Positions 4,007 to 58,968 of a stretch of DNA of 64,000 bases are shown one piece after another. A model generated the notes under the pieces. That model saw only the letters and a program-made list of their open reading frames with translations. It did no database searches and had not been told where the DNA came from. The first letter of the stretch is position 1; every line of letters starts with the position of its first letter. The DNA is from Diplonema japonicum (lineage: Eukaryota; Protista; Euglenozoa: Diplonemea). The position numbers were made by a program, and so were the translations under genes. Where the stretch lies: positions 310,001-374,000 of the forward strand of contig OZ025708.1 in assembly GCA_964019335.1 (NCBI GenBank). The letters run 5' to 3'.

Positions 4007-4249
4007 GGTGGTGGGGATAACATGGAAATATAAGAAGTACATCAGATGTGTTGTTCGCTGTTGACCTCCTCGTCGGTCATCACCGGTAGCGCCCGAGTGG
4101 AAGAACATAATCGGTGACGAACTGCACGAGCGACAGATCTTGGTTACCCGGGGCGCCCCGGCTAGGGTTGAGCACACCGCACGCATTAAGGACACGACGC
4201 GGAACGCAGAAGAAGCTACTGCTCGGCCGCGGAGCCCCCTGTAATCAAG
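4007..4249 (+). mobile_element. SINE-like element with 5' HDV-like ribozyme, copy 1 (3'-truncated)
   Basis: Near-identical to 9435-9702 and 47669-47975. P1 ggtggtg/catcacc, P3 acc/ggt, L3 tcctcgtc, P1.1 gg and J4/2 acgaa are present; the P2 3' strand is damaged. Confidence 0.85.
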
Positions 4250-5520
4250 TTATAAAAAATATAAAGTTTTCCATATTTCAGAAAAGAGGCAGAAAATCAA
4301 CAAATTTTTGAGGTATTTGTGCCACGGTTGTCACCGTTCTGCTGTTGCATCCTGGTGTTGGCTGTCGGGGTTTGCCTTTCAGTCATGGCATCTGCGGTAA
4401 GAGCATCGCTCGTAGCCCTCTAGGTAGGGGCATTTCAGTTCAGCATGGGTCATGCGTCGCTGGTAGTCCCTTTGTAGCTGCCTGAACGAGATTGACTGCC
4501 ATGCTGAAGGCGTGGACGAGCAATTCCCTGTTGGGTTAATGTTATCGGGAAATAGAAAATAAATAAAATTACGTATTCATGAATTAAAGTGGATTTAACT
4601 CTTTTCCCTTGGCTGAGCCGCCGGGAAATAAAAAAGTCCACTTTATTTTTTTTTTTCTTCTTTTTTTCTTTGTTGTTTGGGGGGGGGGGGGGGGGGGGAA
4701 TACTGTTTCCCCTCTTCCTCCCTGCCTTTACAGGGGAAGGGGGAAAAAAAAGAGAAAAAAAGAAGCCGCAACTCACTGGTGGGCTTTGTTTGTGCGCACG
4801 AGCGGAATTTTACCTAATAAAATAGCTCATTACGCTGCCATCAACTAGTTTTTAGTCTCGACAATAGTATTGTTAAAACAAAAAACTCCCCTCGCCTTCC
4901 CCCCCCCCCCTTTTTTTCCCCTCTTGTTCTCCCCTCCCAATTAAAAAAAAGTGCCCAATACCTAACCTCCCTCATCTTTCTTTGTTTTTGCAAGATGAAC
5001 CCAAAACTGAGAGTTTCTTTAGCACTACCACGAACCTCCAGGAAGGGGGGCCTTGTTCTTATGCAACTTTTTGTGCAGAACTAAAAATGATTTTATCTCA
5101 CTGCATGCTAAAATGCCCCTCCTTTTCTTTATAGCTATTGGGGTGCTGCAACAACGCAAAAATAATGCCTCTATGGTATTATAGTTGTGGGCATGAAAGC
5201 AATGCTTATTTCTGGGAGGGGGAGGGGGGGGGGAAAAAGAAGTTTTTTTTTTGCGGGTTTCTTTCCCCCTCAATTTCTTTTTTTTTTCCCCTCCTTCTTC
5301 TTTTAAACGGTGAATGCAGAAAAGAAAGAAACAAGAAAAAAAAACACAAAAGAAGAAGGAAAAAAAAAAAAAAAAAAAAAAAAAAAAGACGCATTACCTT
5401 AAAAGAACGGTTTCTTTTTCATTTTTTTTTATTCCCCCGCTTGCTCTACTATTTCTTTTTTTCCTTTTTTTTTTCTTTTTTTTTTTTTTTTTTTTCTGCG
5501 TCAAAAAAAAGGCAGTCTGG

Positions 5521-9434: not shown

Positions 9435-9702
9435 GGTGGTGTACATCAGATGTGTTGTTCGCTGTTGACCTCCTCGTCGGTCATCACCGGTAGCGCCCGA
9501 GTGGAAGAACATAATGCATGCAGCAAACTGCACGAGCGACAGATCTTGGTTACCCGGAACGCCCCAGCTAGGTTTGATAAATGTACACCGCACGCATTAA
9601 GGACACGACGCGGAACGCAGAAGGAGCTACAACTCGGCCGCGGTGCGCCCCCTGTAATCAAGTAGACAGTTTTTGTGCAGGGCGCCGCCAACACCAGTCA
9701 TA
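9435..9702 (+). mobile_element. SINE-like element with 5' HDV-like ribozyme, copy 2
   Basis: Same core. P1 intact with a shorter J1/2; the P4 3' strand and catalytic J4/2 are deleted. Confidence 0.85.
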
Positions 9703-10108
9703 TTTTTTTTTTATTTGGCGAACTGGCAACAGGGGGGCGTATGGAGCATTGGTGAACAAGATATCCCGGCGTAACAAACCCCTTTGTTGATGCTTAGGGG
9801 GGCTTGGATTCACCGCAACCGCGCTTTGGATTGGGCAGCAGGTCGGACCGCGAAGCGACCCAGGTGTTGGCAACACCTCCTAAAGCGAGCTGGGGATGCA
9901 TGCGCACTCTAGCTTACGGGCGAAAGATAAATGCCCCCCTCCCCGGTCGTGAGGCCTTGGGTGTGGCACGCCATGTCTGAAACGTTTAGCTCCCTTGAAG
10001 CTCACACCAGTGTGCGAGTTTAGCCCATTTTTTGGCACGTTGGCGATGGCTGTGGTGGTCGTTGCAAGAGCGCCTATAGGAAGTATTGGATTCAGTTAAC
10101 AGAATAGT

Positions 10109-36379: not shown

Positions 36380-37041
36380 CCTTTTTTTTTGGGGGGGGGA
36401 GAGGGGTGTTGAGCTACACATCTCAATTCAATTGTAGTTCTTGTGCAGGGTGCCATCTCTTTTTTTTTTTTTTTTATATTTGTGCTCATATATAAATTAT
36501 ATGTGGTTTCCCCCGCCTTTTACTCCCGTTGTCCTAACCACTCGGGAGCGGGGGGAACCCTGTCCCAGTTCCCCCCCCCCTTTTTTTTGGTCCGATACAC
36601 GATTATTCCATCTTGGTGGGGGGGGATCCTGAAAAAGGAGGAGAAAAGGGTTTGTTCTTTTTTTTCCCCAAGTTTCATCAACCCTCTGATGGGGGGGGGG
36701 GGGGAGTAAGACTATCGAAAGAAAAAAACTGGGGAACGGGGGGGGGGGGGGGCGGAAAAGTACCACTATCAGAAGAAGAAAAAAAAGAAGAACAGAAAGA
36801 AGTACCGGAGAGGGTATGCTTCCTTACTGCTTTATTCTCCTATTACTAACGCTTTTTTTTGCACAAAAATAAATGCAAAAGGGAAAAAAAAAGAAGAACG
36901 AGTGTTTCGGGGGGGGGGGGGGGGGGGGTGCGCCTTGCTGTTCGATTTCTTCCCCCCCTCCCCCCCCCCCGTCTTTTTTTTGCGTAATATTTTTTTTTTC
37001 AAAAAAAAACCCCCCCTGTTCAGGGGAAAAAAAAAAAAAAA

Positions 37042-44527: not shown

Positions 44528-44612
44528 AAAAAAAGTTGGGGGGGGGGGGGGGGGGGATGTGCGTGACTCAAAGTTTTCTTCTTTCCAAACTCCGGTTATA
44601 TTATTATTATCC

Positions 44613-44651
44613 AACCAACGATTCTAAAGCTACAGTTTCTGTACTTTATTG
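44613..44651 (+). ncRNA. SL: Complete 39-nt spliced-leader (mini-exon) sequence
   Basis: AACCAACGATTCTAAAGCTACAGTTTCTGTACTTTATTG: 39 nt, with the kinetoplastid/diplonemid conserved 3' half CAGTTTCTGTACTTTATTG. Confidence 0.92.
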
Positions 44652-47668: not shown

Positions 47669-47975
47669 GGGTGGATAACATGAAAATATAAGAAAAACAT
47701 CAGATGTGTTGTTCGCTGTTGACCTCCTCGTCGGTCATCACCGGTAGCGCCCGAGTGGAAGAACATAATGCAGATGCTCAGGGTGACGAACAGACAGCAA
47801 ACTGCACGAGCGCAGAATCTTGGTTACCCGGGACGCACCGGCTGGGTTGAGCTGTACACCGCACGCATTAAGGACACGACGCGGAACGCAGAAGAAGCTA
47901 CAACTCGGCCCCCTGTAATCAAGTAGACAGTTCTTGTGCAGGGCGCCGCCAACACCGGCCTCCTTTAACTCATAT
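47669..47975 (+). mobile_element. SINE-like element with 5' HDV-like ribozyme, copy 3 (most complete)
   Basis: P2 gctgttg/cagacagc, P3 acc/ggt, L3 tcctcgtc, P1 3' catcacc, P1.1 gg, P4 cgcccgagt/gctc-a-gggtg, J4/2 aCgaa (C47787); P1 5' only 5 bp. Confidence 0.88.
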
Positions 47976-48029
47976 ATTATTATTATTCATACAAAAACCT
48001 TGTCTTTCCAGACAGGTTCATTTACTGGT

Positions 48030-58393: not shown

Positions 58394-58968
58394 TTTTTTT
58401 TCTTCTCCCCCCCCCCCTTTCTTTATCATTTGTTTTCCCCAAAACATCTCTGTTGTAAGTTTAACAACAGGAAGGAGGGAGAAAGAGAAAAAAAAAAGGG
58501 CGGGTAATATTTTTTAAAAGAGAACGAGGGGGCGTCTCACAAAGACTTCCTTTAACTCATATTTTTTTTTTTTTTTTTTGGTTTAAAAGTCTGAAATATT
58601 TTCTTTTTTAGCAAACCACAGGGAAAGAAAATAAGAGAAGGGAAGAGCGTGGGGGGGAGGGGGAAAAAAAAGAAATATTCCCCCCCCCACTTTTAAATCC
58701 GTTTTGGTTAACCGAAAAAAAAAAATCCCTTCTTATTTTCCCTTTTTTTCCCTTTTTACCCTTAAATAGTCTCTTCTTTTTTTTTTTTTTTTTTTTTTTT
58801 TTTCTTTTTCCATCTAATACTTCTTAGTTCTTCCCAAATACTTCACTACATCGCCTCTCATTCTCCCCCCTTTTTTTTTCTCTTTTTTTTTTTTCGTTCG
58901 TTCTTTTCAAAAAAAAAAAAAAAAAAAAAAAGAGGGGAAAAAAAAAAAAAAAAAAAAAAAAAAAAGAA

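Follow-up and report, generated by a model that had tools for sequence, protein, structure and literature searches.

What kind of element begins, in copy after copy, at the very base where a self-cleaving ribozyme would cut, and by what means has it spread between the genes of a diplonemid? The question was raised by a 64,000-nucleotide (nt) stretch of the Diplonema japonicum genome, referred to here as the window (GenBank assembly GCA_964019335.1, contig OZ025708.1, forward-strand positions 310,001 to 374,000; C61:310001-374000 of the 62.5-Mb assembly). An earlier note, made from the letters of the window alone, had described three copies of a family resembling short interspersed nuclear elements (SINEs) and headed by a self-cleaving ribozyme resembling that of hepatitis delta virus (HDV). 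Our genome-wide analysis makes it probable that these copies belong to a non-autonomous retroposon of several hundred copies, of the type without long terminal repeats (non-LTR), which bears an HDV-like ribozyme as its 5′ head and is moved in trans by long interspersed nuclear elements (LINEs) of the groups that we call I, J and K, which encode an APE endonuclease and a reverse transcriptase (RT). The features read from its sequence suggest that the element most likely cuts itself out of long host transcripts.

The three window copies have a common start and lie in the same orientation, and their bodies are about 79% identical across all three in an alignment:

4007..4250, + strand: copy 1 of the SINE-like retroposon, older subfamily, about 86% identical to the family consensus
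9435..9703, + strand: copy 2 of the SINE-like retroposon, older subfamily, about 87% identical to the family consensus
47669..47977, + strand: copy 3 of the SINE-like retroposon, 96% identical to consensus positions 9-324, with a 5′ head 5 nt short

In copy 1, the first base of the motif (G1) is 4007, and P1, P3 with its loop L3, the 3′ strand of P1 (P1′) and the ACGAA with the candidate catalytic C at 4118 are intact; deletions have removed its 3′ tail and the 3′ strands of P4 and P2. Copy 2 retains P1 and the core; its J1/2 is shortened, and J4/2, the 3′ strand of P4 and part of that of P2 are missing through a deletion of about 21 nt. The head of copy 3 reads GGGTGGATAAC where the consensus has GGTGGTGGGGATAAC, which limits P1 to five of its seven pairs; the rest of this copy is intact. 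A T-run of about 35 nt precedes copy 1, and T-runs flank copy 2 on both sides. Thus the co-orientation, the common start, the separate lesions, the helix assignments and both coordinates for the candidate catalytic C (47787 and 4118) proposed in the earlier note were all recovered, while the end of the element had to be moved from 47975 to 47977. The three window copies are dead descendants, each disabled by a different deletion.

The family to which they belong has a consensus of 324 nt, and a consensus-like copy lies at L006:1493-1816. A BLAST search of the assembly with copy 3 returned 1,546 candidates, and the 40 that were scored were 95–100% identical over the full length. Genome-wide pattern counts gave 653 exact matches to an 18-mer of the 5′ head, 732 matches with at most two mismatches to the 23-nt ribozyme core (P3-L3-P3′-P1′-GG), 480 exact matches to a 23-mer spanning the P4 3′ strand, J4/2 and the 3′ strand of P2 (P2′), and 817 matches to a 15-nt 3′ tail, which is carried by the LINE partner as well; reversed control patterns gave zero matches for every pattern counted. 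The insertions are dispersed, with the 650–820 matches spread over most contigs. On contigs C1-C7, where the coordinates were cross-matched by hand, about 21 of the 36 exact cores had both flanking segments exact at the canonical spacing, indicating that intact copies of the predicted ribozyme number in the hundreds. The pairwise difference among the best 29 independent copies was 0.7%, and this value, taken together with the 86–87% identity of window copies 1 and 2, shows that the family has both recent and older members. Truncation from the 5′ end has left bare tails at window positions 58520-58562 and at L054:1948-2025. A 15-nt exact match to positions 276-290 of the element, adjoining a T-run, was also seen at 36436-36450 (+) of the window and is probably a tiny fragment or a chance match.

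The only open reading frame (ORF) of the element comprises 77 codons, opens with an ATG inside J1/2 and runs on across the ribozyme core (L006:1532-1765, consensus 40-273; window 47704-47909 in copy 3). Of the 30 best copies, 23 have it intact, which is no proof of function in so young a family, and its product showed no similarity to the LINE loci by tblastn. The 324-nt element has no RT or endonuclease of its own. Given the 77-codon ORF, the former description of the family as non-coding is uncertain. When an intact copy was searched on both strands against Rfam at E up to 10, no tRNA, 5S or 7SL match was obtained. The label 'SINE' is therefore a loose one: with no tRNA, 5S or 7SL part, the family stands nearer to NARTc or SIDE than to a SINE transcribed by RNA polymerase III (Pol III). 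A tie to 5S rRNA genes was dropped, there being no 5S gene within 300 nt of a listed SINE core on the six contigs cross-checked (C7, C15, C17, C20, C23 and C24). Fifteen public runs containing the element were examined as assembled contigs. High summed depth was found in runs labelled as two other organisms, the kind of RNA in these runs being a guess, and a 252-nt contig covering element positions 69-320 in a marine metatranscriptome indicates presence in an RNA library, not cleavage.

An HDV-type double-pseudoknot motif occupies the first 134 nt of the consensus, and the element starts with the G1 of this motif. Its parts are as follows:

P1: GGUGGUG / CAUCACC, 7/7 pairs in the consensus and in 26/30 copies
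J1/2: 43 nt
P2: GCUGUU / GGCAGC, 6 bp including two U·G pairs
Linker between P2 and P3: G
P3: ACC / GGU
L3: UCCUCGUC
P1.1: GG / CC, the GG after CAUCACC pairing with the CC of L3
P4: CGCCCGAGU / GCUC-A-GGGUG, 9 bp with one bulge and a 19-nt loop
J4/2: A-C-G-A-A-C-A, directly before P2′

In copy 3 of the window, these parts map to the following positions:

47670..47674, + strand: remnant of the P1 5′ strand, GGUGG (GGTGGATAAC in copy 3 against GGTGGTGGGGATAAC in the consensus)
47675..47714, + strand: J1/2 insert, holding the ATG (47704-47706) that opens the short ORF of the family
47715..47720, + strand: P2 5′ strand, GCUGUU
47722..47735, + strand: P3 ACC, L3 UCCUCGUC and P3′ GGU
47736..47744, + strand: P1 3′ strand CAUCACC, then the GG of P1.1
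47748..47785, + strand: P4 hairpin, CGCCCGAGU / GCUC-A-GGGUG with a 19-nt loop
47786..47792, + strand: J4/2, ACGAACA, with the candidate catalytic C at 47787 followed by GAA as in C75-G-A-A of HDV
47793..47798, + strand: P2 3′ strand, GACAGC (consensus GGCAGC), the change converting a U·G pair into U-A

L3 contains the U and G of the HDV reverse wobble as well as the CC of P1.1. The L3 U and G (the conserved G being specifically documented), the P1.1 pairs and the C-G-A-A before P2′ are conserved residues of the catalytic core (PMC3774820, PMC13635239), and the 43-nt J1/2 falls inside the range of 23 to over 700 nt that active R2 ribozymes tolerate (PMC3774820). The P4 hairpin is also predicted by plain minimum free energy (MFE) and centroid folding of a consensus-like copy. 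A strict HDV descriptor was passed by 26 of the 30 copies fetched, each match starting at the first base of the repeat. The genome-wide consensus thus keeps P1, P2, P3, P1.1, P4 and the J4/2 C, as had been claimed from three damaged copies; loss of P1/P2 pairing or of that C, which had been named as fatal to the proposal, is not the case genome-wide. The coincidence of the predicted cleavage site with the 5′ boundary likewise stood, G1 being the first base of the family.

If the head explains where the RNA of the element would begin, the tail points to the enzyme that would copy it. Two window features bear on this:

47961..47977, + strand: 3′ terminal 17 nt of copy 3, TCCTTTAACTCATATAT, identical to the 3′ end of LINE families I/J/K
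58520..58562, + strand: 3′ end of an I/J/K-type partner LINE, 43 nt, 5′-truncated, with TTTTTTAAAA upstream and a run of T downstream

The LINEs were sampled as 10-kb excerpts from eleven RT-bearing groups. Groups I, J and K (L051, L052 and L053) end in ...CTTCCTTTAACTCATATAT, followed by (AT)n and then a T-run. Motif search and blastn-short showed that the last 17 nt of the SINE are identical in all three, with the same (TA)n end and the same T-tract flanks; ordinary blastn, in which the SINE was compared with 23 LINE loci at E up to 0.01, gave no match, and the shared tail emerged only from the motif search and blastn-short. This tail is probably the sequence at which the element is recognised and primed. 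Each of the three LINEs also starts with an HDV-like ribozyme motif. In L052, which has an ORF1 of 585 codons and an ORF2 with APE endonuclease and RT domains, the first base is G1 of a canonical motif comprising P1 GGGGCU/GGCCCU with a G1·U pair, P2 CUGGGGA/UCCCCAG, P3 ACC/GGU, L3 UCCACGU, the GG, an 8-bp P4 and C-A-A-A. We infer from these shared ends that an I/J/K LINE mobilises the SINE in trans. The earlier proposal of a non-autonomous retroposon is thereby borne out, as the element lacks RT and endonuclease and has its 17-nt tail, (TA)n end and T-tract flanks in common with a ribozyme-headed APE and RT LINE.

Ribozyme heads are not confined to the partner, and at least seven LINE lineages of this genome have one. 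Covariance models built solely on the P2-to-P2′ segment of the I/J/K LINE ribozymes picked up this core again in A (L043), B (L044), C (L045) and F (L048), four further lineages. Lineage C was first detected by the descriptor, with P1 already in that match. In lineages A, B and F, found by the models alone, a complementary P1 5′ strand lies 60–70 nt upstream of the core, at the boundary of the element; as this strand is absent from the models, its position was not built in. The seven lineages have one 5′ layout, namely P1, a long J1/2, P2, P3/L3, P1′, GG, P4, C-N-A-A and P2′. In six of the seven, a single ATG inside J1/2 opens ORF1 (364–592 codons; start codons at L043:1967, L044:1156, L045:1477, L048:2343, L051:1725 and L052:2219), so that the ribozyme core (P2, P3, L3, P1′ and P4) doubles as the first 20 or so codons of ORF1. 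Relative to the LINE ORFs, all the LINE ribozymes are sense-oriented, and this fixes the strand to which the SINE belongs. LINE-C ends in poly(A), has A-rich flanks and pairs G1 with C in the presence of an intact ORF1; its poly(A) and A-rich flanks indicate that the T-tract habit is specific to I/J/K and the SINE, which strengthens the assignment of the partner. At one LINE-F copy (L048:2250-2301), a complete spliced-leader (SL) exon abuts G1 with no spacer (…CTTTATTG followed directly by GGTGGGGGGTCTG). Two origins are possible for this junction: RT may have jumped to a free SL exon as a new template on reaching a ribozyme-cut 5′ end, or the element may have inserted into an SL RNA gene.

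Comparison of the SINE with the seven LINE lineages revealed that P1 occurs in four sequence versions and P2 in five, all fully paired, and that P3 is ACC/GGU or GCC/GGC. L3 is UCCNNGN(N), and the GG/CC P1.1 is present, in all eight families. P1, P2, P3 and P4 all change with their pairing kept, the SINE row being aligned by the descriptor, not by a model. In the model-fitted alignment of the seven LINE cores, which favours structure by construction, 96% of the cells pair, compared with 74% in shuffled controls and about 50% with slid partners, and 10 of the 17 pairs change on both sides.

The surroundings of the copies agree with the directional-transcript setting proposed from the window. 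In the 1.5-kb flanks, the longest open frame lies on the strand of the element at 20 of the 22 loci with a frame of at least 200 codons (p = 6e-5), so the copies are sense to the surrounding gene arrays. They hold one orientation for hundreds of kilobases, with 12 strand switches among 89 neighbouring copies against about 43 expected (p = 3e-12). In the window, the three copies, the 43-nt LINE tail and nearly all long ORFs are on the + strand. The 30-nt flanks are 64% T on the 5′ side and 59% T on the 3′ side, compared with 24% in the window. Since the polypyrimidine tracts between genes are found on the sense strand, T-tract targeting alone would orient new copies in the sense direction.

Hundreds of intact sense copies lying between genes and adjoining polypyrimidine tracts could also be read as polycistron cleavage points that are kept for the host's benefit rather than as selfish insertions, and the depletion of T and C at −1, the base before G1, in a flank of 64% T would agree with this. 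We regard host retention of this kind as very unlikely, given that the orientation bias follows from T-tract targeting with no need for selection and that the older copies in the window have decayed by deletions inside the ribozyme.

Some arrangements record the insertion habit in finer detail. At L022 (two copies 1,030 nt apart) and in the 5′ flanks of L013 and L008, a new copy sits inside the T-run trailing the 3′ end of an older element, and insertion of this kind gives closely spaced copies in the same orientation. At L009, L014, L019 and L029, the SINE sits immediately after another repeat, noted about 60 nt upstream, that ends in ...GGTACCCTTAAATGTCTC(T)n, which may be either a preferred target or part of a composite element. 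The 5′ junction after the T-tract resembles a polypyrimidine-(C)AG/G splice acceptor (junction at the slash).

Several observations weigh against a ribozyme-headed retroposon and have to be set beside this evidence. Rfam gave no relevant match for the window at gathering score, nor for copy 3 or an intact copy at E up to 10, and a search of the whole genome with RF00094 gave no match; Rfam models encode neither pseudoknots nor a 43-nt J1/2. With E allowed up to 10, and for R2 and R3 with the filters also switched off, the LINE-built covariance models R1-R3 still missed the SINE core. Relative to the LINE ribozymes, this core has an L3 one base longer, a different P1′ and a P4 about twice as long, and since the LINE-built models never detect it, the SINE head fits the fold by descriptor, without demonstrable homology to the LINE ribozymes. 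Nested MFE z-scores were near 0 (SINE +0.64, LINE-J −0.29), no better than shuffled sequence; plain MFE folding is uninformative for a double pseudoknot, so a near-zero z is expected and gives no support. Within the SINE family, a covariation signal is absent because the family, at just 0.7% divergence, is too young. Target-site duplications are inseparable from the T-rich background: the longest shared word is 8.7 nt, against 7.8 nt in mismatched flank pairs, and although T-rich duplications of 7–10 nt occur at L004, L016, L025 and L026, the overall signal is not above background. The cleavage-site pair of the SINE is G1-C78, as in LINE-C, and not the G1·U of LINEs A, B, F, I, J and K. Finally, an A precedes G1 in 24 of 29 SINE copies despite the T-rich flank. 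Of the scoring against HDV models that had been suggested for this family, the descriptor part therefore succeeded and the model part, by Rfam and by the LINE-built models, did not.

The failure of Rfam and of the covariance models to support the SINE head, the MFE z-score near 0 and the yield of the relaxed descriptor, about one match per 480 kb of shuffled sequence, are all what would be seen if a GC-rich repeat fitted an HDV descriptor by chance and its 5′ end had nothing to do with RNA cleavage. Position and company speak otherwise. When the 324-nt consensus was shuffled 100,000 times, the relaxed descriptor matched five shuffles anywhere and none at base 1-2, whereas it matches the real consensus at base 1. 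Moreover, the partner LINE with the same 3′ end has the motif at its own first base, as is also the case for four more LINE lineages, sense-oriented in every one. Chance resemblance is thus extremely improbable.

The cleavage site itself raises a different possibility, that the head is a relic HDV-like fold from a LINE ancestor which cleaves poorly or no longer does so. The RNA's 5′ end would then come from an initiator-like CA/G (start at the slash) or from another nuclease, and the fold would be kept either to bind the LINE protein or to act as a platform like an internal ribosome entry site (IRES). A Watson-Crick pair at the cleavage-site position of HDV slows cleavage, and the replacement of G·U by G1-C fits such a relic. 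So do the sequence YCA/G before the head (besides A at −1, C occupies −2 in 13 of 29 copies, the −2 base being mostly C, A or T), the escape of the SINE core from the LINE-built models and the start of the 77-codon ORF in J1/2. For HDV-like ribozymes, published work records both R2 protein binding at the ribozyme region and roles like those of an IRES (PMC6765202).

Each of these points meets a counterpoint, and we consider a relic unlikely. A family that is still amplifying (0.7%) retains the L3 U and G, the CC/GG P1.1, the C-G-A-A and the full P1, P2, P3 and P4. LINE-C is likewise G1-C and has an intact ORF1; a G·U pair is usual, not universal, at the cleavage site, and G1-C lowers the expected rate but does not rule out the fold. 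Extension of P1 by upstream bases reportedly impairs L1TcRz and R2 (PMC3185411). The A at −1 is unable to pair with G79, so P1 is not extended, and a −1 base of A or G, by avoiding extension of P1 into P1.1, is what an active ribozyme needs (cf. PMC3185411, G-1). The −2 base is variable and hence outside the element. The A at −1 could reflect a target preference, an added base or an initiator-like start, and the RNA may begin one base upstream, for example by transcription initiation at CA/G. An A at −1 was also seen in four of the LINE 5′ junctions examined (junction set L002-L030, L045 and L051-L053).

Taking the ribozyme-headed retroposon as the preferred reading, we propose the following course of events. 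A copy would be transcribed within an RNA polymerase II (Pol II) read-through transcript of its gene array. The head would fold and cleave 5′ of G1, leaving a 5′-OH on the RNA of the element and detaching the upstream RNA. The LINE protein would then bind the shared 3′ tail and nick the A-rich bottom strand of a T-tract, and reverse transcription would be primed from the (UA)n end. A nick of the A-rich strand with priming on (UA)n is the simplest reading of the T-tract flanks and (TA)n ends.

A further suggestion goes beyond the element itself. Sense intergenic ribozymes might cleave Pol II polycistronic precursors in vivo, providing a third route for dissecting polycistrons beside trans-splicing and polyadenylation, and the fold might drive cap-independent translation of ORFs that start in J1/2. 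We hold this to be doubtful; if it were true, ribozyme cleavage would affect the 3′-end formation or the stability of upstream mRNAs.

Two features of the genome stand apart from the family. The window contains an SL exon of the 'Euglenozoa 14' type, which we take to be the Diplonema SL:

44612-44650: spliced-leader exon AACCAACGATTCTAAAGCTACAGTTTCTGTACTTTATTG, differing at two positions from the AACCAACGATT-type SL, 'Euglenozoa 14' in PMC3795323

In addition, ORFs with an OTU-protease domain, of up to about 3,000 codons, were found within a few kilobases of many contig ends (for example, at C9:6630, C16:770850, C31:6562 and C105:6714 and 288569), which suggests that they belong to telomere-associated retroelements.

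Diplonemids are among the most abundant marine protists. A literature search found no publication linking them with HDV-like or self-cleaving ribozymes, in agreement with the earlier note, which knew of no described diplonemid example, and the genome paper on D. papillatum does not mention ribozymes. If the ribozymes described here cleave, diplonemids would join kinetoplastids and animals as hosts of retrotransposition driven by HDV-like ribozymes. The seven LINE lineages and the one non-autonomous element provide a natural series of eight co-varying ribozymes in one genome, a system that bears on how promoter-less retroelements exploit polycistronic transcription, on how T-tract targeting sets orientation and on how a ribozyme core can serve as the first codons of ORF1. 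Several hundred near-identical sites of predicted self-cleavage also matter for diplonemid RNA-seq, for models of untranslated regions and for the boundaries of polycistrons.

HDV-like ribozymes in 5′-terminal position are known from R2, RTE, Baggins and L1Tc/ingi, and their non-autonomous derivatives include SIDEs, NARTc, RIME and SIDER (PMC3185411, PMC4035085, PMC3774820, PMC3414825, PMC6765202); R2/SIDE and L1Tc/NARTc use these ribozymes to leave co-transcripts (PMC3774820, PMC3185411, PMC6765202). The closest parallel is offered by L1Tc/NARTc of Trypanosoma cruzi, and by ingi/RIME/SIDER, which share with the present system a euglenozoan host and polycistronic Pol II transcription. As here, an autonomous APE and RT LINE and its short partner both begin with an HDV-like ribozyme, L1TcRz in Pr77 cleaving at +1, and release from polycistronic transcripts has been proposed (PMC3185411, PMC4035085). 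The differences are nonetheless clear. The diplonemid family starts with GGTGG and Pr77 with CCCTG (primers, PMC3185411), so the absence of the 77-nt ingi signature noted at the outset is upheld by a comparison that covers the 5′ start alone. L1TcRz is contained within 77 nt and has a P1.1 of 1–2 bp, whereas the diplonemid ribozyme motif spans 134 nt, including a 43-nt J1/2, and has a P1.1 of 2 bp and a long P4. The first 77 nt of NARTc are also those of L1Tc, while the diplonemid SINE shares with its partner only the fold at the 5′ end and 17 nt at the 3′ end. The T-tract flanks and the (TA)n end likewise set the diplonemid element apart from L1Tc/NARTc.

In R2/SIDE, a 5′ HDV-like ribozyme sets the RNA's 5′ end out of a co-transcript, conservation is strong in P3, L3 and P1.1 whereas P1 co-varies, and J1/2 is large and variable; non-autonomous derivatives reuse the ribozyme and the 3′ end recognised by RT (PMC3774820, PMC3414825, PMC6765202). 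All of this resembles the case proposed here for the diplonemid elements. However, R2 is a site-specific element of 28S rDNA with a restriction-like endonuclease and Pol I transcription, whereas the diplonemid elements are dispersed, have an APE endonuclease, lie in Pol II gene arrays and prefer T-tracts. The genomic ribozyme of HDV has the same nested double pseudoknot, the same GG/CC P1.1 and a C-G-A-A directly before the P2 3′ strand, and its L3 is UCCUCGCU where that of the diplonemid SINE is UCCUCGUC; the SINE differs in having G1-C for G1·U, a 43-nt J1/2 insert and no RF00094 match. RTE and Baggins are dispersed, promoter-less APE LINEs with 5′ HDV-like ribozymes that serve in processing and possibly in translation initiation, and the examples given are metazoan (Ruminski et al. 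2011, as summarised in PMC6765202). In the diplonemid genome, ORF1 starts in J1/2 and the core is translated in six of the seven LINE lineages.

At its 3′ end, the diplonemid pair resembles a stringent LINE-SINE pair. Such pairs, UnaL2/UnaSINE1 among them, have just the 3′ terminal sequence and a terminal simple repeat in common, as do the diplonemid SINE and its LINE; the diplonemid head, however, is a ribozyme motif instead of a Pol III gene, and the identical tail is just 17 nt long, weak similarity covering perhaps about 40 nt. Taken together, the element is a retroposon of a known ribozyme-headed type in a new host lineage, like NARTc/L1Tc and SIDE/R2, and its own features are the targeting of T-tracts, the (TA)n tail and a start codon inside J1/2.

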